A stretch of 64,000 bases of DNA from assembly GCF_001194135.2 (NCBI RefSeq), contig NC_068987.1:18182678-18246677 (forward strand). Direction: 5' to 3'. Positions 5,433 to 47,749 of the stretch are shown piece by piece. The notes beneath the pieces are model-generated. The model was not told where the DNA came from. It saw nothing but the letters and a program-made list of their open reading frames with translations, and did not search any database. How positions within the stretch are numbered: the first letter of the stretch is position 1; each line of letters starts with the position of its first letter. This stretch comes from Octopus bimaculoides (lineage: Eukaryota). A program made the position numbers and the translations under genes.

Positions 5433-5469
<37 letters not shown>

Positions 5470-12773: not shown

Positions 12774-12817
<44 letters not shown>

Positions 12818-16986: not shown

Positions 16987-17025
<39 letters not shown>

Positions 17026-20786: not shown

Positions 20787-20819
<33 letters not shown>

Positions 20820-23800: not shown

Positions 23801-26135
23801 AAACTGTTGTCCATTGTTTCAAATACATTTTAACATTATCATTCAAGCCTTTTTTAATCGCATATGATTCGTCCCAAAGATAAGAGTTTTGGGCAGAGTC
23901 ATGATGTAAGCACGTGCTAAAACCCCTCATAACATCTTTTATTTTTATGAATTTATACAAATTTTTTTCGATTCTGTCTTCTGCATCATGGAATTTGACA
24001 CGATTATGCAACAAAAAATTTGTAAAACTACTATATTTTGAAGTCGTTATCTGTAATCTACTCCCAAAACACTTCAGTAGCTCTACTTTGCATCACTCGC
24101 AAACTTATATGTTCTATGATCATTAAAATACAATGACATCCACAATAACCACCCTTCAATTTGATTTTCCGTTCCTAGGTTAATCGGGAACAAAGATTGC
24201 CGTGCTACTCATAAACCTTCTCGGTAGTTCAATTATTTGGGGGAAAAAATACCACCAAAGCAACTTAAACCATCTAAAGGATGAGTGCATTTGCTAGTAT
24301 ATCATATACCCAGATGTTAAATGATGATGATCGCTAACCACTACACACATTTTTTTTTTCTCCTTGTTTCTTCCTGTGGAAGAGCGTAAGCTTGAAACGT
24401 TAAAGACTTTTACAATTCCCGAGTGTTATACTAATACATCTGTTTGTTTTCTACACCACCTGTCTTTGTCTTTTGTTTTTTTGTGAATTCTTCCTATATA
24501 TATATATATATATATGCTAGCATGGAAGGCGGATGTTAAACAATGATGATATACATCCCAACAACCAAAGAGAAGCATATATTATATAATATACATTTAT
24601 ATATGTCTGTCTGTGTCTGTATGTGCGTCTGTGTAAGCTACTGCATCAAACTGGGGTTCAACAACAATAACAACAGTGAATAGTAGTTATGTGACATCAT
24701 AATAACTTACCACATATTTCAAGGATCCTTTAGCTGTATAATCTTGTTTGATTTCAAGCTCAACTACATTCCTTTTGCGGTTGAACACAAAATTCCCCAT
24801 GAAGCGTGCACAGCCACTCTGACATCTGACGACGAATTAAGGACCACTGGATGTAACACTATACAGTACTACAGAATATATCAGCAAACAACTACTTCAA
24901 CACTATATAATTTATAGATATAAAAGTTTTGTCTTTATATATAGTATCCCTGTGAATAAAGAAAAAGAGATCAGCAGGAAGAATTTTATCAACCAGAGTA
25001 CCCTCTTTAACTATCTACAGAAATCCTGCTGATAAACCTACTATTTGCTGGGTAGTAGACTTGTAACCAGTAATTGAGCATCTTCATATTGATGGGTGCA
25101 AAGGGTCTTGGTTCCCAAGGTGGCTGTTCAGGCCAAGAGTAATATAGAAGAGCTGAGGACATTTATCACAGGGGAGAGTTAATGGGGGACAAGGAAGTGC
25201 GAGTTACTCTTTNNNNNNNNNNNNNNNNNNNNNNNNNNNNNNNNNNNNNNNNNNNNNNNNNNNNNNNNNNNNNNNNNNNNNNNNNNNNNNNNNNNNNNNN
25301 NNNNNNNNNNNNNNNNNNNNNNNNNNNNNNNNNNNNNNNNNNNNNNNNNNNNNNNNNNNNNNNNNNNNNNNNNNNNNNNNNNNNNNNNNNGATTCCCAGA
25401 CTGGGCGTTGTGAGTGTTTATTGAGCGAAAACACCTAAAGCTCCACGAGGCTCCGACAGGGGATGGTAGCGAACCCTGCTGTACTCTTTCACCACAACTT
25501 TCCCTCACTCTTACTTCCTGTTTCTGTTGTGCCTGTAATTCAAAGGGTCAGCCTTGTCACACTGTGTCACACTGAATATCCCTGAGAACTACGTTAAGGG
25601 TACACGTGTCTGTGGAGTGCTCAGCCACTTGCACATTAATTTCACGAGCAGGCTGTTCCATTGATCGGATCAACTAGAACCCTCGACGCCGTAAGCGACG
25701 GAGTGCCAACAACATTTTCCATCAAATCAATTCTCTCAACAATGACATGCTGCCACTTTGGGTGGCCCTTGGCAATTGTCTCCTAGATATTTGAGTTACT
25801 GGAGCAGTGGAGGAGAGTGGCCTTGAGCTGGTCACAGAAACTGAATTTGAGGGCTTTGTGTGGTCTGGTGCCTGAGGCTAACTCCATGAAAAGGAGTTGG
25901 CAGGGGAGGCACATCTGAAGCATACAAATGAAGTGTCCCAACCAGCAGGCGCAATGTCATGCCACAGTGGCTTTAATGCTGGACAATCCCACTACTATTA
26001 ATAACAAAGCAAATAAATAGAATAGATTGGATAATGAAAATGATAAATATGAAGAAATGATAAATAAATTGGATGATGGTTGACTTGCAGAGTGAAGACA
26101 TTCCTGACAGCTAGTTCAAGTGTGCCAATCAAGAT

Positions 26136-26169
<34 letters not shown>

Positions 26170-29100: not shown

Positions 29101-30072
29101 NNNNNNNNNNNNNNNNNNNNNNNNNNNNNNNNNNNNNNNNNNNNNNNNNNNNNAAAAAGCATTATCTGAACATAATCGATGCCTGGGCTTATGCATTAGT
29201 TTGAAAATAAAAAATACAAACAAAAAAAAATCAAACAATAAAGCAAAAGAAAAAAAAAACAAGAAAAAATGCATAAATAAAAAGATAACAAAATAATGGT
29301 ATTTCTTTACCTGAAGCAATAATTCATAGCCAATTCTAATTTCCAAGATTCTAATCACTAAATGAGCTTTTTTAAAGAATATATCTGCATATTTAGGGGA
29401 TATAAGGTGAGGATTTTTCACTGAAAAATGTAATGAACTTGGTTCTTTTAAAGCAGAAGGATCTAAAACAATGGCACAATTCTTCTCATAGTCCGCAACT
29501 TCTTTCATTTCCTACAATAATAATTAAGAAAGTAAGGAATCAACAAGGGGAAAATATGAAAATAAACACATTTATATTCTGATATATAACAATACTTTTA
29601 ATCAAATGATGTATATTCCTTTACCTGTTTCAGTCATTTGACTGTGGCCACACTGGAGCACCACTTTACAAGGTTCTTTTTTTTTAGAATCAAAGAAATC
29701 AATCCCAACACTTACTCTTTGTAAGCCTAGTATGTACTCTGTCGGTCACTTTTGCTGAAACACTAAGTTGCAAGGACGTAAACTTACCAACATCGGACAA
29801 ACACAGACACAAAGACACACATAAATACATACACACACACACACACACATATATATTATACAACGGGCTTCTTTTCAGTTTCCATCTACCAAATCTATTC
29901 ACAAGGATTTGGTTGGCCCAAGGCTATAGTAGAAGACACTTGCCCAAGCTGCCATGCAGTGGGACTGAATCCGGGACCATGTGATTGGGAAGCGAGTTTC
30001 TTACCACACAGCCATGCCTGTGCTTATTCCCACAGCCATGCCTGCACCTATCCACACAGCCACGCCTGCACC

Positions 30073-30104
<32 letters not shown>

Positions 30105-33100
30105 GGAAAATGAAAAATAATAATAAGGCAGAATGCTAAGCTGGAAGCATATTTTAATAAAGATTTCTAACTGGCTTTCATTGCATAGCAAATTTTCAAG
30201 AAGAGGGAGAATGAAAATGTTTTTTACAAAGAAGTACAAAATGAAGAAAATAATGTATAAAAAAAAATAAATATACCAATACATTATATTGTCTTTGAGC
30301 TTTTAAAGTTCAATGGTAATTCATGTAGATAATGGTTGGAAAGATAAGGATGCATGACAGTTGTGTTAGGTTTAAAAAAAGAGAAAAGGGGTTAAAAGTT
30401 TGTGTTAAGTTTATGCCTGTTCCTAGNNNNNNNNNNNNNNNNNNNNNNNNNNNNNNNNNNNNNNNNNNNNNNNNNNNNNNNNNNNNNNNNNNNNNNNNNN
30501 NNNNNNNNNNNNNNNNNNNNNNNNNNNNNNNNNNNNNNNNNNNNNNNNNNNNNNNNNNNNNNNNNNNNNNNNNNNNNNNNNNNNNNNNNNNNNNNNNNNN
30601 NNNNNNNNNNNNNNNNNNNNNNNNNNNNNNNNNNNNNNNNNNNNNNNNNNNNNNNNNNNNNNNNNNNNNNNNNNNNNNNNNNNNNNNNNNNNNNNNNNNN
30701 NNNNNNNNNNNNNNNNNNNNNNNNNNNNNNNNNNNNNNNNNNNNNNNNNNNNNNNNNNNNNNNNNNNNNNNNNNNNNNNNNNNNNNNNNNNNNNNNNNNN
30801 NNNNNNNNNNNNNNNNNNNNNNNNNNNNNNNNNNNNNNNNNNNNNNNNNNNNNNNNNNNNNNNNNNNNNNNNNNNNNNNNNNNNNNNNNNNNNNNNNNNN
30901 NNNNNNNNNTTTATCTGTCTCTTTTGCCGAACTGCTAGGTTACGGGGACGTAAACACACCACCATCGATGTTGGGGGGGGACAAACAGACATACAAACAT
31001 ATTCACACACATGCATATATATGATGGGCTTCTTTCAGTTTCTGTCTTACAAATCCACTCACAAGGCTTTGGTCGGCCCGAGGCTATAGTAGAAGACACT
31101 TGCCCAAGGTGCCACGCAGTGGGAATGAACCCAGAACCATGTGGTTGGTAAGCAAGCTACTTACCACACAGCCACTCCTGCGCCTATATATATATATTTT
31201 TTTTTTAAGAGTAAAGCAGTTAAGAATAACTCTTTTGTTACCCTATTTCTATTAAAATATACTGCTGAGAGGCAAGAGTATGATAGAGGGGTAGGAAGAG
31301 GCGTCTTGCTGTAGAGGAAAATATGTGACTTCCTCAGCTGGAAGAAGAGAAATGTTGGGAAAGCGATGTCAGGACAAACCCTCAAGGTACAAGAGGGAGA
31401 ATGCAAGTGAAAAAGGGACAGAGGAACAAGTGAGTGGGGATTGGGGCAGAGGATCAGGTAAGTACACAAGAGTGTAATATGAGCAGATGTGGTTGTGTTG
31501 ATAAGTTGTTTGGTATGCTCTACTTCTTTCTTTCTTTCTTTGTTATGTTCTTATGGATGAGATAAATTTTTACAAATTTGGACTCAGGCATTTTTGCTTT
31601 CAAAGCAACCAAGCAAATGATTTTACACCTGAATGCTTTCATCCCTTTCAAACAATTAATTGCTCAACTATAAAACATAACCATACAATTTGTTGTCAAC
31701 CACGTAAGCTGTTTTAATGCCTCGACCCAGAGTAAAACTAAACAGAGGAAAAATAACTAGAGTACTGTATTTGACGGGCTGTACAGTTCACAGTGAAAAC
31801 ACATGGCTCAGGAGTTAGCACGTCAGACTCACAATCAAGAGGCAGTAAGTTCAATTCCTGGACCAGGCTGTATGTTGTATTCTTGAGCAAGATACTTTAT
31901 TTTATGTTGCTCCAGTTCACTCAGCTGTAGAAATGCCAAGCTGTATCAGCCCTTGTTTTTCCCTCAGATAACATCGGTGGCATGGAGAGGAGAGCTGGTA
32001 TGCATGAGTGACTGCTGGTCTTCCATAAACAACCTTGTTCAGACTTGTGCCTCAGAGGGGAACTTTCTAGGTACAAACCCATGGTCATTCATGTGTGAAG
32101 GTGGTCTTTATGTTTTACCCTTTACAGTTCATCATCATTCATCATTTAACGTCCGCTTTCCATGCTAGCATGGGTTGGACGATTTGAATGGGGACTGGTG
32201 AACCAGATGGCTACAACCAGACTCCAATCTGATCTGGCAGAGTTTCTACAGCTGGATGCCCTTCCTAACGCCAACCACTCCAAGAGTGTAGCGGGTGCTT
32301 TTTATGTACCACCGGCACAAGGGCATAAACTTATAAGGCACACCTCAATTTTGGCAGGCCCATTCTCAAACCACCACTTGCCAATAACCTAAACCCAAAA
32401 CCCTTTGTCACCTAAAAACATATACAGTTCACCCAACAGGTTACCATATTGAGGTTTTTCTTTTTTTTTTTTTTTTTTTTTTTTTTTGTAATTTGCTTAC
32501 CTTTGAGATAAAATAGCGATATTCATTGTTTCCAAAAGATCTTTTAACAAACAGTCCAGTTAGATAACCTGCTATGCCTTTGGTGAGCCAAGCATCAGTC
32601 CTGCCAATTAAAAAAAAGAAAAGACCATTTAACGACGCAACTGTCATCATCATTGTTTTAATGTCCACTTTCCCATGCTAGCATGGGTTGGACAGAGTTT
32701 GAGAAAGATTTTCTACAACCAAGATACCTTTCTTGCTGTTAACCCTTACTTGTTTTCAAGCAAAGTAATATCACCAAATGACTACACATATTTTCACAGA
32801 ATACTAGAAATCAATGACACATCATCATCATCATTTACAACAAATGTGTGATGTCAATGAATGTCACTGATTTCCAGTATTCTGCAAAAAACATGCATTC
32901 CACTACAGCAAGACACCTGTTTCTACCTCTCTGTCACACTCTAACCTTTCATCATCTGACACAAGATCACCTCTTCCAATGCTCCCTCTCGTCTCAAAGA
33001 TTCTTCGTCTTGCAAGTTGATTGGTAGCCCTGCCAGTGCTGGTGCCACGTGAAAAGCATCCCATCTACACTGTAAAGTGACTGGCATTTGGAAGGGCATC

Positions 33101-34163
33101 CAGATGTAAAAAAACCATGCCAAAACTGACCTCGCATTTGCTGGTGCAACATAAAAAGCACAGTCCACTCTGTAGTGTGGTTAGTGTTAGGAAGGGCATC
33201 CATGCCAAAACAGACACAGAAGTCTGGTGCAGTCCTCTGCCTGGCCAGCTCCTGTAAAACTGTCCAACCCATGCCAGCTTGGAAGGTGGACGTTAAATGA
33301 TGATGATGATAATGATGATATATATGATGGGCTTCTTTCAGTTTCCATCTCACAAATTCACTCAAGGTTTTGTTGGACCAACACTATAGTAGAAGACAAC
33401 TTTCCCAAGGTGCCACTCAGTAGAACCAGACTATGTGATTGGAAAATAAATTCCTCAACCACACAGCCACACTTGCACCCATTATTCATATTTTGTTATT
33501 TATTTTCTAAATGGTTTTACATGTCAGCAGATGATTCTGCAATATGATTATACCAAATGAACAGCTTTTTCTACAAGGAAAATGGGGGAAAGTTTTGGGG
33601 GCTTTTTTTTTTTCCAGAGGGAGAGAAGTACCTGTGATCATTCTACAGAGTTTCCAAGTCTGGTAGAAAATAGGAAAGCTCTTAATATCATCATACCAAA
33701 GACCCAGTCCAAATACTCACAACAGAGAGAACTCCATTAAAAGCACAGAAGCCTGGATGGGGCTGATAAACCAGGTAACAATTAGAATAGATATGTAAAG
33801 GCAAGTATCTTGTTTAAGGGACACAGTTCAATAGCTTCTATTAACCCATTACCTAACAGTGATCTCATACGAGATCACTTAAAAATTACAAATTTCGTAA
33901 TTATCTGTCAATATTTACACATATCTAACCTTTTTGCTATATCTACTAGGTATATTTCTCTGATATTCAAATGAGGTTTGTTAATTTTTCACCCAATATC
34001 TCACTTATTTCTATTTAAAATGTTATTTTGAAATGTTATTTTGATCATTCCAGTGTGTTTCTAAGGCTGTTTTATGCTAGAAATCAAAGTTTCATAAAAA
34101 ATTCCAGTTAATAGAATTATGGGAGGTAATGGGTTAAGAATGCATGTGTGTGTATGTGCATAA

Positions 34164-34203
<40 letters not shown>

Positions 34204-35046
34204 ATAAAAAAAGAGGAAAAGATAAATCATTTGTCTCAAATTTTGCCAGAGGACTGGCAGTTTTGAGGGAGGGGATAAGTTGATTACATCAACTCTAGTG
34301 GTCTACTGATATTTATTTTACCAACCTCAAAAGAATGAAAAGCAAAGTTGACCTCAGTGGAATTTGAACCCAGAGCGTAAAGACAGACAAAATTAGACTA
34401 AGCATCTTGCCATGCAAAGATTGTGCAGCTCACCGCCTTAAGAGAAAGGGATTAATTATGAAAACAACTAAAATATGCAGGTTATTTCAAAACATAAAAA
34501 AATAAATAAAAAAACACAAACGGTAGTGGGGAAGAAATTCAATGTAAAGGCAGAAGCACAGAACCAGCAGAAACGGGAATAAAAATTCCTACTTACCATG
34601 ATTGCATAGTTATGAAGTTACCGAAGAACTGTTGTGCCACAGCAAATGCCATGAGGTGACGAGATATCAGAGTTTGGTCAATGACACGAGAGGAATGGAG
34701 AAGTGATGTACTGAAAACAGATGAGGATTCCATAATCATTGTCATGCACTCAGAAATGCAAAATGTGGATTGTCGGAAAGAAAAATACATACAAAAAAAA
34801 ATAATAAAAACACAAACAAAAAGACCAGTTTCCACTCTCAAACAGGATTCTTCACTCACGTCTGTAATGTCGCTATTTTGAAAAAGTCTGTTGTGTTAGG
34901 TGCAGGTGTGGCTGTGTGGTCAGCAGCTTGCTTCCCAACCTCATGGTTCCAGGTTCAGTCCTACCGCATGGTACCTTGGACAAATGTCTTCTACTATAGC
35001 CCTAGGCCAACAAAGCCTTGTGAGAGGATTTAGTAACCAGAAACTC

Positions 35047-35088
<42 letters not shown>

Positions 35089-36022
35089 TGTCTTTGCGTT
35101 GGTTCCCTACAAACACTAACAATCAGTGTTGGTTTGCTAACGTCCTTGCAACTAAGCAGATCGGCAAATGAAACCGATAGAATAAGTACGAAGCTTAAAA
35201 TGAATAAATGGATAAATCCTGGGGTCGATTCGTTTCACTAAAACCATTCAAAGCAATGCTACAGCATGACCAGTTATGATTGAAAGAAATAACAAGCAAA
35301 AGATAAAAGACAAACTGATTTTCATGGAGTTATCTCCCTTGCTTCCTGCTGATTTTTTNNNNNNNNNNTTTGCGTTGGTTCCCTACAAACACTAACAATC
35401 AGTGTTGGTTTGCTAACGTCCTTGCAACTAAGCAGATCGGCAAATGAAACCGATAGAATAAGTACGAAGCTTAAAATGAATAAATGGATAAATCCTGGGG
35501 TCGATTCGTTTCACTAAAACCATTCAAAGCAATGCTACAGCATGACCAGTTATGATTGAAAGAAATAACAAGCAAAAGATAAAAGACAAACTGATTTTCA
35601 TGGAGTTATCTCCCTTGCTTCCTGCTGATTTTTTTTTTTTTTTAAATTCACAGAGAACTTTTGTCTATACACACATACACATAATAGCAAAAATGGGCTG
35701 AGGTTCACCACAGCTGTTTCAGACGCGTTTTTTGATTGATGAACAAATCAATTACATCGTGAAAAGACAATAAGAATATTGATCTGTTCATGTACATGAA
35801 AAGTAAATCCTTATATTCACACGCTGATATATGACTTATGTTGGACCCCTTATTCACATAATCACCAAACTTGGAGCTTAACTGTGGTCTACAATAGCAC
35901 TTACTCAGCATTACCTGAAACCTCTGGGTCTAATTGACACCACTATCGCTCATAACCTATATATATATATATATATATATNNNNNNNNNNNNNNNNNNNN
36001 NNNNNNNNNNNNNNNNNNNNNN

Positions 36023-36062
<40 letters not shown>

Positions 36063-38654
36063 GTGCATGAGTGTACATCAGTTGGCTAATGATGATGATG
36101 ATGGAATGATGATGGTCATGTGTGGAACACCTTTGACGGTAAGTCTTTGATTTAATCAAGTCTGACACGGTGCTAAACAATAGCACCTGCAACAACAACA
36201 ACAACGACAACTTACCTAAATATTGTCATGGTGGCATAAGGACAGCATTCCATAAAAGATTCATCCACAAAGACTTGTTTGTAGCATGAATATGGGAATC
36301 TACTAGACATCAATTCTTCAAAAAATTCAAAAGCCTGTGAAGAAAATAAATGGTCTATAATCAGGTTTGTAATTATGACCCACCCTAACTTACCCACCTG
36401 CCTGTTCTGATTTTCTGTAACTATTCTCTCTTCTACTTATCTTATAAATCATCGCTGCCTTTTTTCTCTCAACATCTTTGCAGTTACTCCCTCCCTTTCT
36501 TATATAAAGCAGGATGGCCATGTATCACTTCTACAGCAAGACACCTATTTCAGTTGTCTTATATTTTAGCCTCTCAACATTTAGCTTAAAGCTATCTCCC
36601 TGTATACTATGCTCCCACTCAATTAAGTGGGGTATCTTTTAGCTAGCAATTCGCTAGTGCCAGTGTCATGAGAAATAAGTACACCCGTCACCTCTCTGTG
36701 AAGTGGTTGGTGCTAGGAAGGGTATCCATCCACAGAAGCCATGCCCAAGTAGAGAGTGAAGCACTAGGCTAACAAAGAATAAGTCCTGGGGTCGATTTGT
36801 TCGACTGAAGGCAGTCCTCCAGCATGGTCGCAGTCAAATGACTGAAACAAGTAAAAGAGAACAGGAAGTTTGCATCATAGACCCAAAGGTAGTCCCAGAC
36901 AGGTTGATGCCAAAAGGGTAAAAGGATAATAAAAAAAAGGATTTTAAGAAAATTAAGAAGAATTATTTAATCAACTTACTTCGTGAATAAAGGCTGTTGT
37001 GTTCTTCATAATGGTACGTAAATGTGGAAGACAAAAGTGGGTAACTTCATGCATATTGGGATCAACTAGAATTTCAAAAGGTCTGAAATAAGAGAAATTA
37101 TTTGGGGGGGTCTTTAAAAAAATTATCAACAACATTAAAATGAAAGAAATTATGAAAAGGACAACTTAGAAAATTTTTCACAGTAAAGTTTCCATCTTGA
37201 AATAGTTAACTCTTCAGTCATTTGACTGCGGCCATGCTAGAGCACCGCCTTTTAGTTGAGCAAATCAACCCCAGGACTTATTCTCTGGAAGCCTAGTACT
37301 TATTCTATCGGTCTCTTTTGCCAAACCGCTAAGTTACGGGGGACGTAAACACACCACCATCGGTTGTCAAGCAATGTTGGTGGGGGACAAACACCGACAC
37401 ACAAACACATACACATACATACATACTAAGGTACTTGAATTGGTTAACAAATTACAAAATCTCACCACTAACATGGTAGTCTTTCAAAGAGTGAGACGCC
37501 AGCAGGTAAACCTGTGATGTGTACATGCCATAACCTTCAACAGTTGCTTGGACATTAGTGACAGTCTTACTTTTTTCCATTTCCCATGGACCATCAAGCA
37601 ATGAGAGATTTCCACCCATCATAGTTACAAGACCTATGATGAGTCTATTCCCAGGCCAGGCCCGTAGTACTCAACCAAATCTTGACCAGACATTGATGAA
37701 GTGGCCAGCATTTATTTCACAAGAAGTGTACCTCTTCCAGCTGAATAATTGAGTAAAAGACTCAAGAATAGGGTAGGAATGCTTAAAGGTTTACAAATGA
37801 AATAAACAAGATAGAGATGCCAAGAATCATGCAGTTAAATGTTGAAATCTCACCAGTAGATAACACAGAAAATAAAAAAGAAAAGCATCTAACCACTTAC
37901 CCTATGGCCAGGGCTATATTTGGGGCAGAGGTAGGTGTTGACAAGAAATAATGAAAAGTTTTGTTCTTGCGATCACTTGTAGCCACAATTTCTATTAAGT
38001 CTCCGCAAGACACGGCAGTTAGAAGGCGATCAACAGTGAATTCCAGTTTCCAAGTGCATGGTTCACTATAGCTATCAATGCAGGGGAACCACAATCTAAA
38101 AAAAAGAAAATGGCAGACGACATTAAAATATTAGCAGGTTGTCAAGGGACACAAAAACAATTTCTAAAATTGGAATTAAACTAAGGGTATATATAATTAT
38201 AGGTGTGGGAATGGCTGTGTGGTTAAAAAACTTGCTTCTCAAACACATGGTTTCAGGTTCAATTATGCTGTGTAGAACCTTCGGCAAAACACACCAATAT
38301 CCTAGACTGGATCCTAAAAAAGGTCATGCATGTAATCACACACTAACACAATCCAAACACTGACCCACAAACGTCCTGACACTTCTCTCTCTCTCTCTGT
38401 TTTTCTACGACTACTATAATGACCACAATCCCTCAAAGGCAGTTGGTCTTGTGCTATCTCTACTCAGGTATTCCCAACTCACTCATCTCTCTATTCACTA
38501 CTATTTTTAACATGTTAAAAGACCATATATAGACATTCCTCATTACTTTGTTAAGTGTAGACATAGAATAAATGTAACCTATATCTCTGCAAGACATAGG
38601 TCACATCTTTTACCAATGAATGTTTCCCCCCTTTACATTTTAAATTTTTTGCTA

Positions 38655-38685
<31 letters not shown>

Positions 38686-41600
38686 ATATATATATATATA
38701 TATACGCACATACATATATATCATCATCACCATCACCATCATTTAGCGTCTGATTTCCGTGCTGGCATGGGTTAGACGGTTTGACTGAAACTAGTAAGTT
38801 GAAGAGTTGCACCAGGTTCCATTCTGATTTGACATGGTTTGTACAGCTGGATGCCCTTCCTAATGCCAACCACCCCAAGAGTGTAGTGGGTGCCAGTTAC
38901 GTGACACTGGCATCAGCCACAACTACAACTTCGCTTGGCTTGACATGTCTTCTCAAGCATGGCATAACACCAAAGATATGCATATCACCAAAGGTCTTGG
39001 CCACTTGTAGGTCATGAGAAGCATGATGCAAATGTGTTGTTTGATTTTTTGTCTTCATTTCAGTTTTCTACATAATATATTATTAAATCAATTAGACTTT
39101 TTCCAAAACACACAAGAATACAACAAAATAGGTACTACCACCCATGATGCCAAATATAGACTTAAATTGGTACCATCATCAACAAGCACTAATGCTAACA
39201 AGATGTTTACTATTGCATACACAGAACACACACAAAAGAAAGACAGAGAAATTAAATTCACCTTGAAGAATTCTCAGTACCATATGTAAACATGTGAGCT
39301 GCTTTTTCACCCAAATTTCCTTCCATATCTGGAACCACAAAATGGATACCAGCATCTGGTTTTTCTATGGAAAATTCTATACAAATTCGAATAGGTTTCA
39401 GCTCTGAAAAAAGAATAAAGCAAAACAATCACAAATATAGAAACTAGAACGTTAGTTATCATATGACAGGTAACTTTAGAAGTATACTTTTGGTTGGCAT
39501 TAGGAAGAGCATCCAGCTGTAAAAACCAATCTAAAATCAGATGAGCCTGGTACAGCTTTCCGGCTTGCCAGTTCCAGTCAAACTGTCTAACCCATGGCAG
39601 CATGGAAAATGGACACTAAATGAAATAATGAAGAAAGTGAGAGATAAATAAATGAAAGGAGTTTTGCCTACAAAATTTTTCTCACAAAGTTTTTGCCAAT
39701 CCAAAGCTATGGTATAAATAAAAAAAAAATATTGCTCAAGGGGTCACAGTGGGATTGAACCTGAAATCATGTAGTCATGAACCCATGAAACAAACTTCAT
39801 AATCTCACAATCATTCCTGTTACCATGTCTGTTGTCTTAAGATTTAAGTCAATCAAGGTGATGATGATGATGTGGTATGGTGATAGCATAGTAGAAGTGG
39901 AAACAAAAACAAAGTGACTGAAACTTTGTTACACTCTCATTACTAACCTTGGACTAAATTCAGAGCTTCTGGTGGCAACTTGATAAGTACTTCACCATTT
40001 CCTGTGTCTGGGTCAATGGAATTCATCACAGACAAATGGTATCGTTGGAAAAATTCCAAATTTCTTCTGAAACAGAGCAGATATTTTTTTACAATAATAT
40101 TTACAATATTTAAAATTTACAATAACATCATAAAATATTTAATTCATAATTAATTCAGATTTAATTCATTGTCCATTCTGCTGGGTGGTTGGTGGTTGGT
40201 GTTAGGAGGGGTACCCAGCCATGAAAATCATGCCAAAACAGACACAGAAGTCTGGTGCAAGTCTTCTACCTGGCCAGCTGCTGTCAAACCATCCAACTCA
40301 TGCCAGCATGGAAGGCAGACTTTAAACAATGACGATGATGATGACTGATGATTTATCAAAGACAACCTTCAAGCAGCATTGCAACACAAGTGTTAGACTG
40401 ACAACCATTAGGAAAGAGGAGAGTTGGATGACTTAGGAAGGCCTGGGAAGCATGTGTGGAGGATGAGGCAGAAGCAATCAGTCTCTCTTGATCTGACATC
40501 AAGGAGTAAGTCCAAGATCATGTCCACTGGCAAGAAGAAGTGGTGGTGGCCCTATGCTCCTTACAGAGTAATGTGGACTAACTTAACTTAAAGTTAACTC
40601 ATAAGTCATGAATATAAACACAAAAATGAAGCTACTTGGAAAAACCGTAGTTGTGTTTCTATAAAGTAGTTGGTGTCAGANNNNNNNNNNNNNNNNNNNN
40701 NNNNNNNNNNNNNNNNNNNNNNNNNNNNNNNNNNNNNNNNNNNNNNNNNNTGCCAGAAGAAATGTTTAGCAGTATTTCGTCTGCCGCTACGTTCTAAGTT
40801 CAAATTCCACCGAGGTTGACTTTGCCTTTCATCCTTTCGGGGTCGTTTAAATAAGTACCAGTTACGCACTGAGGTCGATATAATCGACTTAATCCCTTTG
40901 TCTGTCTCCTGTGTGTGTAGCCCCTTGTCGCCAGTAAAGAAATAAGAAGTGGTGGTGGCCCTATGCTCCTTACAGAGTAATGTGGACTAACTTAACTTAA
41001 AGTTAACTCATAAGTCATGAATATAAACACAAAAATGAAGCTACTTGGAAAAACCGTAGTTGTGTTTCTATAAAGTAGTTGGTGTCAGAAAGGGCATGTC
41101 AGCTGTAGAAATCATGCTAAAGCAGAAATAGGGCTTGATGCAATGCTCTAGCTCATTAGATCCAGTAAAACTGGACAACCCATGAAAGATGGACATCAAA
41201 TGATGATGATGATGATTATGATAATAGTTGATAGCTTTTGTTAGCCAGGTGACCTAATCAACAGTGGAAGAGTGTTTTAAAGGCATCGTAGCCAGAATTA
41301 GAAAAGGATGGAAAAAGTTCAGAGACCTGTTACTACTTCAGCTGACAACAATGCAATTTTCTTTCCAAGTGAAAAGTAGATTGTATGACGCTTGTGCACT
41401 AACTGTAATGCTGCATGATAGTGAGATGTGGACAGTGTATGCAAAGGATGTGCAATGACTGGAGATAAATGAAGCAAGCATGCTCCACTGCTCATGTAAT
41501 GCTAGCGAGCATTACTAACAAAGCACAGATGAGCTGAGAAAAAAACCTGTCAGCTCACTGCCTTTAATGATAATAAAATAGCTTCTAATCTTGGCACAAG

Positions 41601-44600
41601 ACCATCAATTGTAAGGAGAAGGAGAAGGCGTTAGTTGATATTGCCAACCACAGTATTTGACTGGCTCTTTATTTTATAAACCCTGGATAAATGAAAGGCA
41701 AAGATGACCGTGGCAGAATTTGAACTCAGAACACAGAGTCAGAATAGATAATACCATAATGCATATTTTTTGATGCTCTGACAAATTCTGTCTTTCAAGA
41801 TAATAAAATAAAGTTTAGAAATAATACATTTCTAAATCTCTCAGAGAGATTTATGCAGTAGTGATACGATGAAGTAGTTATATGCTCTCAACTTAATGTG
41901 ACAGTCCCCTGAAGAGAATAATACTACTGTTGGTTAGACCTAGGAAGCTGCACCGCTTCCTGTTGGCCATGACACATTTCNNNNNNNNNNNNNNNNNNNN
42001 NNNNNNNNNNNNNNNNNNNNNNNNNNNNNNNNNNNNNNNNNNNNNNNNNNNNNNNNNNNNNNNNNNNNNNNNNNNNNNNNNNNNNNNNNNNNNNNNNNNN
42101 NNNNNNNNNNNNNNNNNNNNNNNNNNNNNNNNNNNNNNNNNNNNNNNNNNNNNNNNNNNNNNNNNNNNNNNNNNNNNNNNNNNNNNNNNNNNNNNNNNNN
42201 NNNNNNNNNNNNNNNNNNNNNNNNNNNNNNNNNNNNNNNNNNNNNNNNNNNNNNNNNNNNNNNNNNNNNNNNNNNNNNNNNNNNNNNNNAGGTATGAAAT
42301 GCAGAGCTAACCTAAGCAGGATTTGTACTCAGAATGTAAAGATGTAGAAAAAATATTGATTTCAAATTTTGGCACAAGGCTAGCAATTTCAGGGGAGGGG
42401 TTAGGTTGATTACATCGAGCCCAGTGCTCAACTGGTACTTACTTTGTTGACCCTGGCGAAAGGATGAAAGGCAAAGTCAACCTCAGCAGAATTTGAACTC
42501 AGAATGTAAAGACGGACTAAATGCCACTAAACATTTTGCCTGGCGTGCTAACGATTCTGCCAGCTCGCCACCCACATAGAATCAATATTGCGAGACATTT
42601 TTCCCAATACTCTAACAAGTTCTGCCAAGTTGCTGCTTTTGAAGAGAATAAAACAATGAAACAACAAATCAATTTTAACCAAAATAAAAATTTGTCTGGA
42701 AAAGTGAGTGTTAAAACAATGATGATGAAGATGATGATAATGACTTACTGTTTGATGTCACCTTGACATATCTCCAATGTTGGGTCATTATAAAAGAATG
42801 TAGCATCCCACTGCTCATCAATGCAGATACGATAGATTTCTGTGTAATGTTAAAGAAGATAAACAGTTGTTTTATTAAATTTCAGACCTTGTGTTTAAAA
42901 GAATGTGCTAAGAAGTATGTATGATTCATTGGAGAAAAGACAAGTTGTCTGCCAATTGATAACAAGCATGGTTGTGTACAAAGCAGACTTCTTAACCACA
43001 AAGTTTTGGGTTCGGTCCCATTACACAGCATGTTGGATAACCATTTTCTTACCATAGCCTCCGGTTGACCAAAGCCTTGTGAATGGAATTCAATAAATGG
43101 GAAGTTGTACAGAAGCCAGCTTGTCAAATATTCATTTGTTTAACACCTATTTTCCCATGTTAGTAAGGGTTGGATTGTATGTTGGTTCAGGTTCAGTCCC
43201 GCTGCAGGGCACCTTGGGCAAGTACCTTCAACTATGGCCCAAGGTTGTCCAAAACCTTGTGAATGGATCTGGTAAACAGAAACTGAAAGAAGCCTGTTGT
43301 ATATGAGCGTGTGTGTGTGTGTGTGTGTGAGAGTGCTTGTGTCTTTGTTTTGACATCACATGATAGCTGTGAATGAGCCTCACAATCATAGATACAGATA
43401 ACAGCATAGAAGTGATGTTATCTGTTTCAAACCTTCAGTAGAAAACATGTCTGGCCTCGGGGAAATATTACCTTGCTTGGACACAAATGAGGGTTGGTGA
43501 AAGGAACAGCGTCTGGCCACAGAAACCATGAAACCTCATGGTTGGGAAGCAAACTTCTTAACCACACAGTCACACTTGTATCAATCATCATCATCGTTTA
43601 ACGTCCGCTTTCCATGCTAGCATGGGTTGGACGATTTGACTGAGGACTGGTGAAACCGGATGGCAACACCAGGCTCCAATCTAATTTAGCAGAGTTTCTA
43701 CAGCTGGATGCCCTTCCTAACGCCAATATATGTATATATTTATATAAATTCATGGGACTGCATGTCATCACAGGTACATTTGTTTTGGGGTACAATCAAA
43801 TTCTGCCTAAGCAGTCGTGTTTGTTTCCACACATGATGTCATCAATGTATATATGTTTATAATACTGATATCCATATTGAATATATAGTGATATGACTGA
43901 AATATTCAATTACTACCAGTGGATGTATATCTGTGTAAATTTACAAATTTTAAACCCAGAGTAAGGTTTAGTAAATAAGAAACATGCTGTTATTTGGACC
44001 TGTTGTTTTGGAGTGAAAGAATAATGTAATTTATCTGTGAATGTACACAACACAGGCTCAGGAACTCCCTAAAATTTTGTGGGGGTAATGAAAATGCTTC
44101 GAACCTCCTCCTGAAAAACTGAGTATGCACACACTAAGCAAACTTTGTTCCTGCACTTATGGTACACAGTATATGTTCAGGGGAAAAAATTAGTAAGAAA
44201 AGAGAGGATGAGTGTCACAAATGTTGTCATGGCTGTTTGAGCTTATTGTTTAAAGGATACTACTCTGTGAACTGTTGAGTTTAACACAATAGAGATCAGG
44301 CTTCAGGGGATGGAGGGTCAGTTCAACATAACCCTGAAAAGAAAAGGAAAAAAAAAACGTTTAAAAAGGTTGTATTGTAAGTTTACAACAGAATGAAAGG
44401 ATATGAAAATAACATGACATGATGTAGTTTAACTATAGTTGTAAGATAGGGTTCAATAGATAAGATAATGAGCTAGTGGTTAAATAAGATGTGAGGTCAT
44501 ATACCCTGAAGGCTCTGGTAATAGTGGTATTTTAACCTTATTCTCCAGATTAGAATCTGTATAAAAATGCTTTGATTTATGTAAGATATGGGTAATGAAT

Positions 44601-47600
44601 GTGAAGAAGCAGAGAAGGCAGGAGAGCAAGATGCCAGCAGATAAAAGCTTTCTCTAAGCTGCATTAGTTTTTAGAGCCAATCTGCTGCCCTTAACTTTTT
44701 AGCCTTCAGACTATTCTGTCAAATGTAATGCTTATTTAGTTATAATGTTTTGGATTTATCATGGATTATCTTGTAGCTTCAATATTTTGAATCATGTGAC
44801 TGTTTGCTTTTAGAATGACGTTGTAGGATAGGTGTGAAAGGCCAGATCTGGTTGGTTTGAACTTAAAAGAGGTAGAACATCTGGGACAGACATGACCGGT
44901 TTAACACCAAAGGGTTAAGCTAGCCATACCTGGTCAAAATATTCTACCTGTTTTACAGTCAAACTGGCCATGTCAAACTTCTCATACCTTCTCTACAATG
45001 TCATTCTAAAAATAAACAATCACATCATCAAAATCTCGAAGCTACAAGATAATGCACGATAAATCAGAAATGATGTAAATAAATAAATAAGCATTACATT
45101 TGACAAGTAATTTGAATGACAAAGGATTGAATAAATAATTGCTTCTGAATTAAACAGCAATTTTGAGGGGAGGGAATTTAGTCAATATTGTTAACCAAGT
45201 ACTTAAATGGTACTTTATTTTAGCAAACCCCAAAAGGATGAAAGGCAAAGTTGATCTTCATGGGATTTGAACTTAAAACATAAAGTGTCTGGTAAAATAA
45301 CGCAAGGCATTTTGTTTGATGCTCTACCGATTCTGCTAATCCACTGTCTTTAAACAAATAATTAAAATAAAAATGAAAAAACAAGGGAAAACTTACAATG
45401 AGAGATTGAGTTTCAAAGTTAATCGCTGTGATGCATAAGGTTTGGTGAGCTGTAGAAGAAATAAATAAATAAATAAAAATTGAAATGGATTGTTCCAGAC
45501 ATAGCTAAACATTGAATTAACATACAATTTCAAAGACATTGTGAAGCCTGAATCATCAACATCATCATTGATTTACAGTGGAAGTGAAGAACCTGTAGCC
45601 TTCTGAAAGAAATACGATGTTGAAAGAAAAATCAATATATTGGAATAAAATTTTATGGATTCAATCTTATGTAAAGCCTTTTTTTTTAAAAAAAAAACTA
45701 ATTGTGAATTTTAGAAACATCTATTAAATATTTCTTATCTACATTTGGAATTACTTTTTTTAAAACAATTACAATTGTGTTTGACCCTTAAGTGACAGGA
45801 AAAGGTTGCAAAGCGGGCAAAAAAAAAATATATCTTTTCTCCTTAAAAGTAATTTTTATACTTATTTTCACCTTAAATAAGTACAAAAACTAAGAAAATG
45901 ATGCTTTAACTGTCTTAGATTATAAAACTAAAGACAAAAGGGCAATAAAATCATTTGAGATTCCTGCAATGTTGTTGTCGAAAGAATGTACAAATGGAGA
46001 AAAACTAAAGCTAGTTGAAGCATCATTCCGGGTTCAGTCCCACTGCGTGGCACCTTGGGCAAGTGTCTTCTATTATAGCCTTGGGCCGACCAAAGCCTTG
46101 TGAGTGGATTTGGTAAACGGAAACTGAAAGAAGCCCGTCATATATATGTATATATATATATATACATATATATGTGTGTGTGTGTGTGTGTGTGTCTGTG
46201 TTTGTCCCCCCAACATGGCTTGACAACCGATGCTGGTGTGTTTATGTCCCCGTAACTTAGCGGTTAGGCAAAAGATCCCGATAGAATAAGTAGTAGGCTT
46301 ACAAAGAATAAGTCCTGGGGTCGATTTGCTCGACTAAAAGGCGGTGCTCTAGCATGGCCACAGTCAAATGACTGAAACAAGTAAAAGAGTAAAGAGTAAC
46401 TTCCAGAGGTAAGAAAGGCAAAATCGACCTCACTGGGATTCGAACTCGGAACTTTACAGAGAGTAACTTGGTCTACCGATTCTACCACCCACTAATACAA
46501 AACAGTAAGAAAGATCAACATGATTTGCACATGAGTGGCCGCTCCATCAATGACATGAATAACATTAATTAGTTATTGATTAATAATTCAAACACATAGC
46601 AGCTTGAGTTTATGGATAATGAAAGAGTATACAACAGAGCATATCTGTCTCTTAAGTAGTGCAGTGGAAGTTTATTAGCCGGCGCTGTGCTGTATAATCA
46701 AATTACACGACAAATGTAAACAAGAATAATGTCGTCAAAGTTTGGATTCTTTCAACTAAGACACCAACTATCGTGTCAGTATTGCCGGTGTTATTCTGAA
46801 AGGATTGATTACCTCAATATCAGATATTACTGATAAATCACAAGAGATGAAAAATACCCCCTGCCCAAACAGATTAGGTTGATGAACTATGAAAGGCACA
46901 CACGGAAACAGCTGTTTCCGTTTAAAGTTTATCTTTAGAGTGATAGATTATCGGCATTCTTTCGTTTTAACCTGCAGTGTCTATATAATTTCAAGTTATA
47001 TATTTAAATTTCCCTCTATCAACTTACGCATAACTACACAAGTGTGCCCCTCAACTTAGACCGTGTTTGTTAAATTGTTTATCATTTACTGTAACTTCAA
47101 ACCTCGTCTCGTGATGCAAGTTTAATGTCAAATAGTAAACAAGATGATTGCAAATGTGATTTATAGTCATTGATACAGACTCATGATAAAGTGTATGATT
47201 TGACTAGAAGGAAAGCAGCAAAACAGTTAAGATTCAAAACTGAGAATACACATCAAGGGGAAAACAAAAACACTGCAGAAAGCACTCTAGTTGAATCTTA
47301 GGCATATTGATAAAATGCTTTAACTATAGATGTATATAGTCGTTTGTTCATCTTGTACTTTGTTTATGCTTTTGCTTTTATGTGTATTTAATCTAATAAT
47401 TACAAATATCCAGTTTGGGTTATCATACTGGAAATTTTTGATCAGGTAACCCTTACATCGAACAACATTTGAGGTTTTTAATCACAATGCTTAATTATAA
47501 CATAAAACATACTGAAAATGATACTCGATAAAATGCAAGCATGGCTTGTTACGTCAATCAATTTACAAACATAAACTAAACATCATGTTTATTTAAGATG

Positions 47601-47749
47601 TATGTATTATCCGCGTATGTCTCTAGATTTAGTTTCATCATTACATTTTATACAACAGTGCTTGCTACTGATATATCTAGTTGAATATACATACATAGTT
47701 TAAATTGCCGTTGTGGCTCGCTCTTGGATTCTTTCTTCGATTTCTGCAT
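4465..47749 (-). CDS. TAF2: Transcription initiation factor TFIID subunit 2, whole spliced gene (30 visible coding exons plus one missing in a gap)
   Basis: Spliced translation gives recognisable TAF2 blocks in order: [160 protein letters not shown] and a [16 protein letters not shown] tail. All visible introns are GT-AG and phases are consistent except across the gap-containing intron. Confidence 0.97.
5804..5969 (-). CDS. TAF2: TAF2 exon 30 ([55 protein letters not shown])
   Basis: Acceptor TTTTATTCAG, donor G|GTAAGA; 166 nt. Confidence 0.75.
6020..6310. repeat. (CA)n-derived minisatellite filling TAF2 intron 29
   Basis: Recurring CACACACAGACATGTATA units; source of many H/T/C/V pseudo-ORFs. 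Confidence 0.9.
6326..6901 (-). CDS. TAF2: TAF2 exon 29, Pro/Thr/Ala low-complexity ([13 protein letters not shown]...[10 protein letters not shown])
   Basis: Acceptor TTTCTTTTTAG, donor GTAAGT; 576 nt open, phase 0-0; overlaps ORF 5957-6847. Confidence 0.85.
8481..8963 (-). CDS. TAF2: TAF2 exon 28, Pro/Ala/Thr low-complexity ([10 protein letters not shown]...[11 protein letters not shown])
   Basis: Acceptor TTTCTTTCTTAG, donor GTAAGT; 483 nt open, phase 0-0, in frame with exon 27. Confidence 0.85.
9981..10080 (-). CDS. TAF2: TAF2 exon 27 ([33 protein letters not shown])
   Basis: Acceptor TTCTCTACAG, donor GTAAGT; 100 nt. Confidence 0.96.
10210..10736. mobile_element. piggyBac-like MITE carrying a nested SINE-B
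   Basis: TTAACCCTTTGACTGTCC ... GGACAGGCCAAGGGTTAA (16/18 inverted match); SINE-B at ~10243-10530 inside. Confidence 0.7.
12400..12504 (-). CDS. TAF2: TAF2 exon 26 ([34 protein letters not shown])
   Basis: Acceptor TTATTGCAG, donor GTAAGA; 105 nt. Confidence 0.95.
13183..13252 (-). CDS. TAF2: TAF2 exon 25 ([22 protein letters not shown])
   Basis: Acceptor TTCTGTTGCAG, donor GTAAAG; 70 nt. Confidence 0.92.
14257..14396 (-). CDS. TAF2: TAF2 exon 24 ([46 protein letters not shown])
   Basis: Acceptor TGTGTCGCAG, donor GTGAGT; 140 nt. Confidence 0.96.
14600..14778. repeat. GAA/GAG purine-rich tandem repeat in TAF2 intron 23
   Basis: Recurring GAAGATGAAGAGGAGGAGAAGGAGAAGGT units. Confidence 0.85.
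14832..14948 (-). CDS. TAF2: TAF2 exon 23 ([38 protein letters not shown])
   Basis: Acceptor CTTCTTCCCCAG, donor GTCAGC; 117 nt. Confidence 0.95.
15100..15650 (-). mobile_element. SINE family B, long copy (GGTTGGCGTTAGGAAGGGCATCCAGC core, (GAT)n tail)
   Basis: About 17 recognisable copies: ~5027-5130, 10243-10530(+), 11918-12350, 13930-14091, 18435-18760, 19348-19670, 20788-20986, 28750-28935(+), 32125-32325, 33015-33315(+), 38718-39020, 39490-39625(+), 40190-40345(+), 43585-43726, 53965-54128(+), 58741-59380. Source of the recurrent [11 protein letters not shown] pseudo-ORFs. Confidence 0.85.
15909..15994 (-). CDS. TAF2: TAF2 exon 22 ([28 protein letters not shown])
   Basis: Acceptor ATCTGCAG, donor GTAAGT; 86 nt. 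Confidence 0.95.
17150..17260 (-). CDS. TAF2: TAF2 exon 21 ([37 protein letters not shown])
   Basis: Acceptor TTCATTACAG, donor GTAAGT; 111 nt. Confidence 0.96.
17749..17889 (-). CDS. TAF2: TAF2 exon 20 ([47 protein letters not shown])
   Basis: Acceptor TTATTTGTAG, donor GTAAGA; 141 nt. Confidence 0.96.
18845..19095. mobile_element. hAT/Charlie-like MITE fragment
   Basis: Ends TTGAGAACCCCTG. Similar CAGTGNTTCTCAA-type termini at ~11150-11255, 20343-20410, 53113-53250 and 53888-53945. Confidence 0.45.
19193..19312 (-). CDS. TAF2: TAF2 exon 19 ([40 protein letters not shown])
   Basis: Acceptor CTTTCAAG, donor GTAAGT; 120 nt. Confidence 0.95.
21320..21452 (-). CDS. TAF2: TAF2 exon 18 ([44 protein letters not shown])
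   Basis: Acceptor CTTTTTAG, donor GTAAGT; 133 nt. Confidence 0.96.
21560..21950. mobile_element. Two tandem diverged partial copies of another TTAA/CCC MITE
   Basis: TTAACCCTTTTG at ~21561 and TTAACCTTTTTG at ~21719, followed by the shared block TTTGTTTCAATTAATTTTGAAAATAATGA; ends GGTATCAAAAACAGGTTAA. Confidence 0.55.
22036..22101 (-). CDS. TAF2: TAF2 exon 17 ([21 protein letters not shown])
   Basis: Acceptor TTTTCCAG, donor GTAAGA; 66 nt. Confidence 0.96.
22810..22919 (-). CDS. TAF2: TAF2 exon 16 ([36 protein letters not shown])
   Basis: Acceptor TTTCATTTCAG, donor GTGAGT; 110 nt. Confidence 0.96.
23316..24297 (+). mobile_element. Candidate non-autonomous Helitron-like element
   Basis: A|TC start after (TA)n, CCAATTTTCACCAAACTT motif near the 5' end, CTAG|T end; only a weak 4-bp subterminal stem; single copy in the window. 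Confidence 0.4.
24711..24825 (-). CDS. TAF2: TAF2 exon 15 ([38 protein letters not shown])
   Basis: Acceptor TCCTTAATTCGTCGTCAG, donor GTAAGT; 115 nt. Confidence 0.94.
24836..24843 (-). promoter_or_regulatory. U12-type branch site TCCTTAAT (TAF2 intron 14)
   Basis: TCCTTAAY 11-12 nt upstream of the exon 15 AG, no polypyrimidine tract; the matching donor is not visible. Confidence 0.7.
25716..25989 (-). mobile_element. Degenerate RTE/BovB-like LINE 3' ORF fragment
   Basis: [58 protein letters not shown] resembles the RTE motif LRWxGHVxRMxxxRLPKQLLYGELxxGxRxxGxPKKRYKDQLK. Confidence 0.65.
26314..27042. other. Assembly gap, most likely location of missing TAF2 exon 14 (alternative: gap 25213-25390)
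   Basis: Exon 13 ends in phase 0 and exon 15 starts in phase 2. The conserved peptide between them (human FLKSISNVSGKDIQPLIKQW) was not found in the visible sequence 24826-27692. Confidence 0.6.
27060..27191. repeat. 44-bp tandem repeat, 3 copies, abutting a gap
   Basis: Units start at 27060, 27104 and 27148 (AGTGATCGTTGG...TCAAATCCA...ACTCTCA). Confidence 0.85.
27693..27785 (-). CDS. TAF2: TAF2 exon 13 ([31 protein letters not shown])
   Basis: Acceptor TTTTGCAG, donor GTAAGT; 93 nt. Confidence 0.94.
29311..29511 (-). CDS. TAF2: TAF2 exon 12 ([10 protein letters not shown]...LHFSVKNPH...[20 protein letters not shown])
   Basis: Acceptor TTATTGTAG, donor GTAAAG; 201 nt. Confidence 0.95.
31797..32110 (+). 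mobile_element. SINE family E (tRNA-like head, GAGCAAGAYAC...TTGCTCCAGT block)
   Basis: Second diverged copy at ~60285-60680; the central block is shared with the copies at 11680-11770 and 57115-57170. Confidence 0.6.
32501..32600 (-). CDS. TAF2: TAF2 exon 11 ([33 protein letters not shown])
   Basis: Acceptor TTAATTGGCAG, donor GTAAGC; 100 nt. Confidence 0.95.
33841..34137. mobile_element. piggyBac-like MITE (TTAA TSD, CCCATTACCT TIR)
   Basis: Perfect terminal inverted repeat TTAACCCATTACCT ... AGGTAATGGGTTAA. Confidence 0.8.
34597..34710 (-). CDS. TAF2: TAF2 exon 10 ([37 protein letters not shown])
   Basis: Acceptor GTTTTCAG, donor GTAAGT; 114 nt. Confidence 0.96.
36216..36334 (-). CDS. 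TAF2: TAF2 exon 9 ([39 protein letters not shown])
   Basis: Acceptor TCACAG, donor GTAAGT; 119 nt. Confidence 0.96.
36980..37082 (-). CDS. TAF2: TAF2 exon 8 ([34 protein letters not shown])
   Basis: Acceptor TATTTCAG, donor GTAAGT; 103 nt. Confidence 0.96.
37901..38095 (-). CDS. TAF2: TAF2 exon 7 ([21 protein letters not shown]...PNIALAI)
   Basis: Matches ORF 37897-38094; acceptor TTTTTAG, donor GTAAGT; 195 nt. Confidence 0.96.
39262..39403 (-). CDS. TAF2: TAF2 exon 6 ([46 protein letters not shown])
   Basis: Acceptor TTTTTTCAG, donor GTGAAT; 142 nt. Confidence 0.94.
39948..40066 (-). CDS. TAF2: TAF2 exon 5 ([39 protein letters not shown])
   Basis: Acceptor TGTTTCAG, donor GTTAGT; 119 nt. 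Confidence 0.94.
41230..41530 (+). mobile_element. Degenerate RTE-clade LINE fragment (C-terminal to RT)
   Basis: DSFC*PGD...[14 protein letters not shown]...VKSRLYDAC...MLHDSEMW...LEINEASML resembles the RTE consensus FCYLGD...ARVRxAWKKFRELL...LYGSETW...LERNEASML. Confidence 0.75.
42355..42569 (-). mobile_element. SINE family C (tail type 1), full-length copy
   Basis: Head GGCGAGCTGGCAGAATCGTTAG and B box GAGTTCAAATTC; body TTGCCTTTCATCCTTTCG...AAGTACCAG. Other copies at ~2578-2865, 3460-3660, 3690-3895, 6950-7080, 7525-7880, 9058-9240, 27955-28130, 34235-34430, 41580-41800, 45155-45350, 52700-52915(+), 53290-53440(+). Confidence 0.85.
42749..42839 (-). CDS. TAF2: TAF2 exon 4 ([29 protein letters not shown])
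   Basis: Acceptor TTCTTTAACATTACACAG, donor GTAAGT; 91 nt. Confidence 0.94.
42849..42857 (-). promoter_or_regulatory. U12-type branch site TTCTTTAAC (TAF2 intron 3)
   Basis: One mismatch to TTCCTTAAC, branch A about 10-11 nt upstream of the AG, no polypyrimidine tract. Confidence 0.85.
44251..44260 (-). promoter_or_regulatory. U12-type 5' splice site GTATCCTTTA (TAF2 intron 3)
   Basis: Exact match to the RTATCCTTT minor-intron donor at an exon boundary required by the reading frame. Confidence 0.92.
44261..44333 (-). CDS. TAF2: TAF2 exon 3 ([24 protein letters not shown])
   Basis: Acceptor TTTTCAG; donor A|GTATCCTTT (U12 type); 73 nt. Confidence 0.93.
45397..45449 (-). CDS. TAF2: TAF2 exon 2 ([17 protein letters not shown])
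   Basis: Acceptor TTCTTCTACAG, donor GTAAGT; 53 nt, phase 1 to 0. Confidence 0.92.
47695..47749 (-). CDS. TAF2: TAF2 exon 1 ([18 protein letters not shown] +1 nt)
   Basis: ATG in TTTTACCATG context; donor T|GTATGT; aligns to the RPYKL/RPFKL N-terminal motif. Confidence 0.85.

Follow-up and report, generated by a model that had tools for sequence, protein, structure and literature searches.

Minor-spliceosome (U12-type) introns are already known from TAF2, the gene encoding TFIID subunit 2: intron 12 of mouse Taf2 has been described as a U12 intron that is retained upon SMN depletion (PMC4601534). More generally, minor introns tend to avoid phase 0, have been reported to be relatively abundant in molluscs and Limulus, and are known for non-canonical termini (PMC10639083). 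Work on 'minor-like' introns further indicates that the lack of a G at donor position -1 and acceptor position +1 marks dependence on the minor spliceosome, and that CC in the branch site goes with strong U12 recruitment (Olthof et al. 2024, PMC11347168). Here we analyze TAF2 in a 64-kb stretch of contig NC_068987.1 (the window, to which all positions given without a locus name refer), where the coding region occupies 4465..47749 of the minus strand. Our central finding is that the third intron of this gene (44260..42840, minus strand, phase 1), characterized by reading its sequence, by an exon map and with a classifier, is very probably a GT-AG U12-type intron that is ancestral and orthologous across metazoan lineages.

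Canonical GT-AG U12 introns combine an exact /GTATCCTTT donor (a slash marks the splice junction throughout) with a branch site of the TCCTTAAC type lying 10 nt before the 3' splice site, have no polypyrimidine tract, lie in a non-zero phase and show deep orthology with subtype switching. Intron 3 is the same in each of these respects; it differs by one C-to-T change in its branch site, TTCTTTAAC, and its dependence on U12 is a predicted one. Read directly on the minus strand, it is 1,421 nt long, opens at 44260 with GTATCCTTTA and closes at 42840 with ...ATCTTCTTTAACATTACACAG, in agreement with the extent and ends given in a preliminary description of this DNA. The 5' splice site GTATCCTTT (44260-44252, minus strand) matches the U12 consensus [AG]TATCCTTT at 9/9 positions. 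The branch-point sequence TTCTTTAAC (42857-42849, minus strand) matches TTCCTTRAC at 8/9 positions and is followed by 9 nt, ATTACACAG, to the end of the intron, which puts the presumed branch adenosine (42850 or 42851) at a distance of 10-11 nt from the 3' splice site, the 3'-most A being 10 nt from the end. Only ATTACAC separates the AAC of this motif from the terminal AG (42840..42841, minus strand), and there is no polypyrimidine tract between the two; the pyrimidine-rich stretch just 5' of the intron end is the branch motif itself. The exact U11 site, the near-consensus branch site about 10 nt from the AG and the missing tract that had been described earlier are thus all present. Exon signals of the major type are absent at both ends (agta/GT... 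and ...AG/aaat), with an A rather than a G at donor position -1, where the exon reads ...AGTA, and an A rather than a G at acceptor position +1.

The intron interrupts, in phase 1, the Lys codon of TAF2 ...KLNSSQS^KIYRI.... Exon 3 (44333-44261, minus strand, 73 nt) ends with the first base of this codon, and exon 4 (42839-42749, minus strand, 91 nt) opens by completing it. Exon 1 (47749-47695, minus strand, 55 nt), which carries the ATG, and exon 2 (45449-45397, minus strand, 53 nt) precede exon 3, so that the earlier label 'intron 3' holds.

With this architecture, splicing would be expected to take the pathway established for the class, the U11/U12 di-snRNP (small nuclear ribonucleoprotein) cooperatively recognizing the branch site TTCTTTAAC and the donor GTATCCTTT, the donor through U11 and later U6atac. 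The U12 small nuclear RNA (snRNA) segment GUAAGGAA would pair with TTCTTTAAC, the single C-to-T change leaving a G-U wobble, and the 3' splice site would be picked by its short 10-11 nt distance from the branch adenosine, not by a pyrimidine tract. We infer that this species would remove intron 3 with the minor spliceosome; slow or rate-limiting splicing, which has been claimed for minor introns in general, may by analogy extend to it.

To place these signals against background we counted them in the window. The 9-mer donor motif is by itself not significant (1 found against 0.62 expected in 64 kb), and the case therefore rests on its placement at an exon boundary with a branch site, and on conservation. 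A 9/9 donor occurs at 1 of the 7,158 GT sites of the window, and a TTCCTTRAC motif matched at 8/9 or more positions, with its branch A 8-15 nt upstream, at 11 of the 6,994 AG sites; the joint chance of both signals is ~2e-7 per intron and, over 26 introns, ~6e-6 for the gene. Intron 3 is the sole one of 24 resolved TAF2 introns with U12 signals, the others reaching at most 6/9 at the donor and having GTAAGT/GTGAGT-type donors with pyrimidine tracts. We also built a small classifier resembling intronIC, with U12 matrices derived solely from the orthologous introns of other species, a U2 matrix derived from the other 23 introns in the window, and leave-one-out scoring. By this measure the donor of intron 3 scores +15.6 bits for U12 over U2, compared with -3.8 to -16 for every other intron, and no branch site in the gene scores higher than its own (7.8 bits; 9 nt separate the motif from the 3' end). 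At the sequence level, every feature of U12 membership that we tested was found in intron 3.

We next turned to conservation, reading the homologous codon in TAF2 loci from public assemblies; cnidarian, annelid, brachiopod, echinoderm and cephalochordate loci lay outside this comparison. A phase 1 intron with a U12-type donor is present at this codon in five other lineages. In Limulus polyphemus it is an AT-AC intron of 2,601 nt (L002 6125-8725; agtgtc/ATATCCTTTTTT...TTTCTTAACTTTAGTGTAC/gtattt) with the donor ATATCCTTTT, which is also the donor of a 180-nt AT-AC intron in the bryozoan Bugula neritina (L003 3829-4008; ATATCCTTTTTA...ATCCTTGACCAAGTTGTTTCAC). The tick Rhipicephalus microplus has an AT-AC intron of 630 nt (L011 9411-10040; ATATCCTTCGCT...GACCTTAACTGCGACGCAC; donor ATATCCTTCG), and the sponge Ephydatia muelleri a GT-AG intron of 591 nt (L006 3244-3834; GTATCCTTCTCA...TACCTTAACTTGACATCAG; donor GTATCCTTCT). 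In the scorpion Centruroides sculpturatus we read a GT-AT intron of 3,642 nt (L010 17043-20684; GTATCCTTACAA...TTTCTTAACATTTATTAT; donor GTATCCTTAC), the sole split of six protein-compatible ones that bears a U12 donor, and that donor is perfect. The termini of this scorpion intron appear to be non-canonical GT-AT, with the branch site 9 nt from the junction.

The orthologues with AT-AC termini (Limulus, tick and Bugula) and with GT-AT termini (scorpion) share with the window intron its codon, its phase and a /TATCCTT donor, and their branch sites lie 10-14 nt before the 3' end; their termini differ from its GT-AG and their lengths range from 180 to 3,642 nt. Such switching of termini (GT-AG, AT-AC, GT-AT) while the /TATCCTT donor and the branch distance stay constant is characteristic of U12 introns. 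Because a U12-type intron occurs at the same codon and in the same phase from sponge to chelicerates, its origin goes back at least to the common ancestor of metazoans. In contrast to these lineages, the exon is continuous, with no intron at this codon, in the carp Labeo rohita (L001), in a mammal-type genomic contig (L009 1135-1296, encoding GFVELTIFPTVANLNRIKLNSKQCRIYRVRINDLEAAFIYNDPTLEVCHSESKQ) and in the dragonfly Ladona fulva (L007 5364-5528). Vertebrates and the dragonfly thus lost intron 3 by precise deletion, not by conversion to a U2-type intron.

These comparisons bear on what the preliminary description had proposed or left to be checked. Its assignment of the intron to the U12 class is upheld both by the features of the sequence and, most strongly, by the U12-type orthologues at the same codon and phase. 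It had asked whether the vertebrate gene has an intron here, and neither the carp nor the mammal-type contig does. Of the two histories it had offered, an ancestral metazoan minor intron that was retained agrees with the comparison, but a lineage-specific gain does not, the intron being present in a sponge, a bryozoan and three chelicerates.

Other loci add detail around this position. In Saccoglossus the sequence leading up to exon 4 contains a U12-like branch site, AACCTTGAC, and exon 3 itself lies within an N gap of 19 kb. The public gene models of Saccoglossus (L005, P0099) and Rhipicephalus (L011, P0078) begin with spurious residues right before ...RIYR/RVYR, and the start annotated for the tick is ~0.6-1 kb downstream of its true exons 2 and 3. 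Both models break exactly at the U12 intron, a typical annotation failure at minor introns, and recognition of intron 3 would mend these TAF2 annotations, which start wrongly there. The locus of the closest protein (P0028; L004, ENA contig ctg201847_2x_l) was set aside as uninformative for the position of intron 3, as it has only two introns. The protein is 67% identical, and the TAF2 copy encoding it spans ~4.6 kb (L004 5001-9630) and is without both of the minor introns discussed here; this copy may represent either a relative poor in introns or a retrocopy that was processed in part.

Of the alternatives to a true U12 intron, the one that survives best keeps the same junction and treats intron 3 as a 'minor-like' or hybrid intron removable by the major spliceosome, with U1 binding weakly to GTATCC, U2 using TTTAAC as yUnAy, and the upstream TTTATCTTCTTT serving as a pyrimidine tract. 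Minor-like introns have a slightly sub-consensus branch site, as intron 3 does, and the single C, rather than CC, in TTCTTTAAC agrees with this possibility (PMC11347168), as does a pyrimidine content of 0.68 at -25..-4. However, the donor, which matches the U12 site at 9/9 positions, is very poor as a site for U2-type splicing (T at +4, C at both +5 and +6, exonic TA rather than AG at -2/-1), a G is lacking both at -1 and at acceptor +1, where it is said to permit rescue by the major spliceosome (PMC11347168), the 10 nt from branch site to AG are typical of U12 introns, and the AT-AC orthologues cannot be ordinary U2 introns. In its perfect donor, its lack of -1G and +1G and its short branch-to-3' splice site distance, intron 3 is unlike the minor-like introns and corresponds to the 'responsive' true minor introns of the same study (PMC11347168). 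We consider a hybrid intron improbable, and favor a true U12-type intron.

Some evidence does weigh against that assignment. The branch site carries a single C, although Limulus and the scorpion have a similar single-C variant; the transcript that supports the intron 3 junction comes from a related species rather than from the window's own; and the existence of a minor spliceosome in this organism is presumed from the literature on its presumed phylum. An Rfam scan of the 64-kb window returned 0 matches, and no minor snRNA gene was found within it.

The transcript in question, L008 (Logan SRR23936168), is an RNA-derived contig of 4,998 nt that carries a full-length TAF2 mRNA; it comes from a close relative with ~80% nucleotide identity. 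Window exons 1-4, when spliced (55+53+73+91 = 272 nt), align with it without gaps at 74% identity and with all three junctions in register, exon 3 being of equal length in both; this ungapped alignment therefore supports the 73-nt exon 3 and the GTATCC donor. The intron 3 junction is in ungapped register with all orthologous proteins as well (...KLN[SC]KQC-R-IYRV...; KQC-R/K-IYR). An in-frame, U2-like donor, CAGA/GTAGTA (44258..44263, minus strand), lies 3 nt upstream, at 44263. Its use would keep the reading frame and, with a match to the 9-mer alone expected 0.62 times per window, one could argue that this or another cryptic site is the true donor and that GTATCCTTT is intronic by coincidence. 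Splicing at GTAGTA would, however, drop a residue present in all orthologues (score 70 vs 80) and yield a 70-nt exon as opposed to the 73 nt of the L008 mRNA, and it would leave unexplained both a branch site at U12 distance and a conserved U12 donor at the same codon in five other phyla or classes. We rejected this donor and regard the explanation as very improbable. That the gene model itself is wrong, the locus being a pseudogene or misassembly with no functional intron, is scarcely credible, for although the window is a gapped draft (16 N runs, 3,566 N in total), none of the gaps lies inside or beside intron 3 and all mapped TAF2 exons are open and conserved.

Mouse intron 12 shares with window intron 3 both its gene and its intron class. 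The vertebrate minor intron lies at about residue 523, in phase 2, after ...QWV, whereas window intron 3 lies at about residue 71, in phase 1, at KQC^R/K-IYR. We rejected the identity of the two, as their positions differ and the exon is continuous at the intron 3 codon in carp and in the mammal-type contig; vertebrates retain the QWV intron but are without a counterpart of intron 3. Counterparts of mouse intron 12 were located in carp (L001 24697-27725; ...PLIKQWV(gt)/GTATCCTTCAAATG, donor GTATCCTTC), Limulus (L002 23283) and tick (L011 21935), and Limulus and tick carry both TAF2 minor introns. There is no intron at the QWV site in Bugula and Saccoglossus, where the exon is continuous.

The window contains part of what appears to be a second minor intron at this vertebrate position. 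An acceptor at 24826..24844 (minus strand; GTCCTTAAT-TCGTCGTCAG, GGTCCTTAATTCGTCGTCAG/a) precedes the exon that starts at 24825, (V)CQSGCARF.... Its branch site, 10 nt from the AG, is U12-like and has the second-highest branch score in the gene (7.3 bits), there is no pyrimidine tract, and the intron is homologous to the U12 intron of carp, Limulus and tick. The preceding exon, FLK...QWV, is 62 nt long in the relative's mRNA (L008 nt 1567-1628) and is absent from the window. Upstream of it comes the exon ending ...NVLLSTNS (27693..27785, minus strand), followed by a U2-type donor, GTAAGT, at 27692; between 27692 and 24826 we found neither the FLK...QWV exon nor a U12 donor, only motifs with 1 mismatch and no coding context. 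Two assembly gaps, 26314..27042 and 25213-25390, lie within this interval, and most likely one of them hides the exon and the donor of this second, candidate minor intron. We predict that the hidden exon is 62 nt long and ends ...CAATGGGT, followed by the donor GTATCCTT. TAF2 thus probably had two ancestral minor introns, both of which this animal would retain, the second as a candidate.

Intron 1 (47696-45450, minus strand) is of interest for a different reason, as its junction can be read in two ways: as GT-AG (aaactat/GTATGT...CTACAG/ct), encoding KLSHQ, or, with both boundaries moved by 2 nt, as AT-AC (aaact/ATGTAT...TTCTAC/ag), encoding KLAHQ. The relative's mRNA (L008) encodes S at this junction, which favors GT-AG. 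In carp and scorpion the intron has the form ATAAGT...polyY...AC (polyY, polypyrimidine), and in Limulus, by the annotated protein, ATAAGT...AA. Human and Drosophila TAF2 are reported to have a U2-type AT-AC intron at this position (intron 1 in human). The S encoded by the relative's mRNA suggests a 2-nt slide from AT-AC to GT-AG in the lineage of the window.

The preliminary description had proposed that a core TFIID subunit in this animal relies on the minor spliceosome. The U12 signals are consistent with such reliance, which would not be special to this animal, however, as mouse Taf2 intron 12 makes clear (PMC4601534); its TAF2 mRNA would need the minor spliceosome, probably at two introns. 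What the gene does offer is a clean case of differential retention. Of the two TAF2 minor introns, one persists in vertebrates and the other was deleted there; the intron persisting in vertebrates was lost from Bugula and Saccoglossus, Bugula having the other, and both are still found in Limulus and tick. Two minor introns in one TFIID gene, and three terminal subtypes at one position, make a textbook-style example, not a surprise: intron 3 is a standard, ordinary GT-AG U12-type intron, and nothing known about minor introns is changed by it. Our literature search found no paper discussing this particular TAF2 intron, and the genome-wide catalogues (intronIC/IAOD, MIDB and the pan-eukaryotic survey, PMC10639083) probably already include such introns in bulk, where the gene is annotated. 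A broader scenario would be that TAF2 of the metazoan ancestor had two minor introns (KQC^RIYR and QWV^) and a non-canonical AT-AC intron 1, that the N-terminal minor intron was maintained in lineages ranging from sponges to molluscs and chelicerates, with three terminal subtypes on the way, as its slow splicing gates the output of a TFIID subunit, and that vertebrates exert the same control through the other intron; we hold this to be conceivable but doubtful.

Besides the intron 3 donor, RTATCCTT has two further matches in the window, at 4270 and 44404, neither of which is a splice site. The first, GTATCCTT at 4270-4263 (minus strand), was considered as a third minor donor and taken as a chance match, as it lies in the 3' untranslated region, ~195 nt beyond the stop codon, and not at an exon boundary. 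The second, ATATCCTTT at 44404-44396 (minus strand), is an exact AT-type U12 donor motif within intron 2; exon 3 begins 63 nt, and the real donor 144 nt, downstream of it. A splicing enhancer that binds the U11 snRNP and acts on an upstream 3' splice site can be formed by a conserved pair of U12 5' splice-site motifs that lie close together, as in SNRNP48 and RNPC3. We rejected ATATCCTTT as such an enhancer or as a decoy, given its 144-nt distance and its lack of conservation in intron 2 of Limulus, tick, sponge or Bugula; the motif is probably due to chance.

An interspersed repeat, TTCAGTTTCYGTTTACCARATCCAYTCACAAGG..., occurs in at least five copies in the window: at 43255-43287, 46096-46128 and 56691-56723 on the minus strand and at 29874-29906 and 31034-31066 on the plus strand. 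The first of these lies within intron 3, beside a (CA)n run, and part of the length of intron 3 is therefore transposon-derived.

For the gene model as a whole, at least 27 TAF2 exons were mapped on the minus strand, from ~47.7 kb to ~4.5 kb, placed by tblastn and then with database orthologues, and followed exon by exon in the relative's mRNA. The first tblastn probe was a human TAF2 sequence; every conclusion rests on proteins and loci that were subsequently retrieved from databases. The coding region, of at least 28 coding exons, runs from the ATG at 47749 to a stop near 4465, the open reading frame (ORF) of the last exon terminating ...SSPEFQVI*. In the region of window exon 5 the relative's TAF2 mRNA is frameshifted (L008 415-470) into two overlapping ORFs of 119 and 1,282 amino acids, either through an assembly error or as a real variant. 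Finally, the AT skew of the window changes direction at about 48 kb, a short way 5' of where TAF2 starts, which would fit a divergently transcribed neighbor gene on the plus strand.

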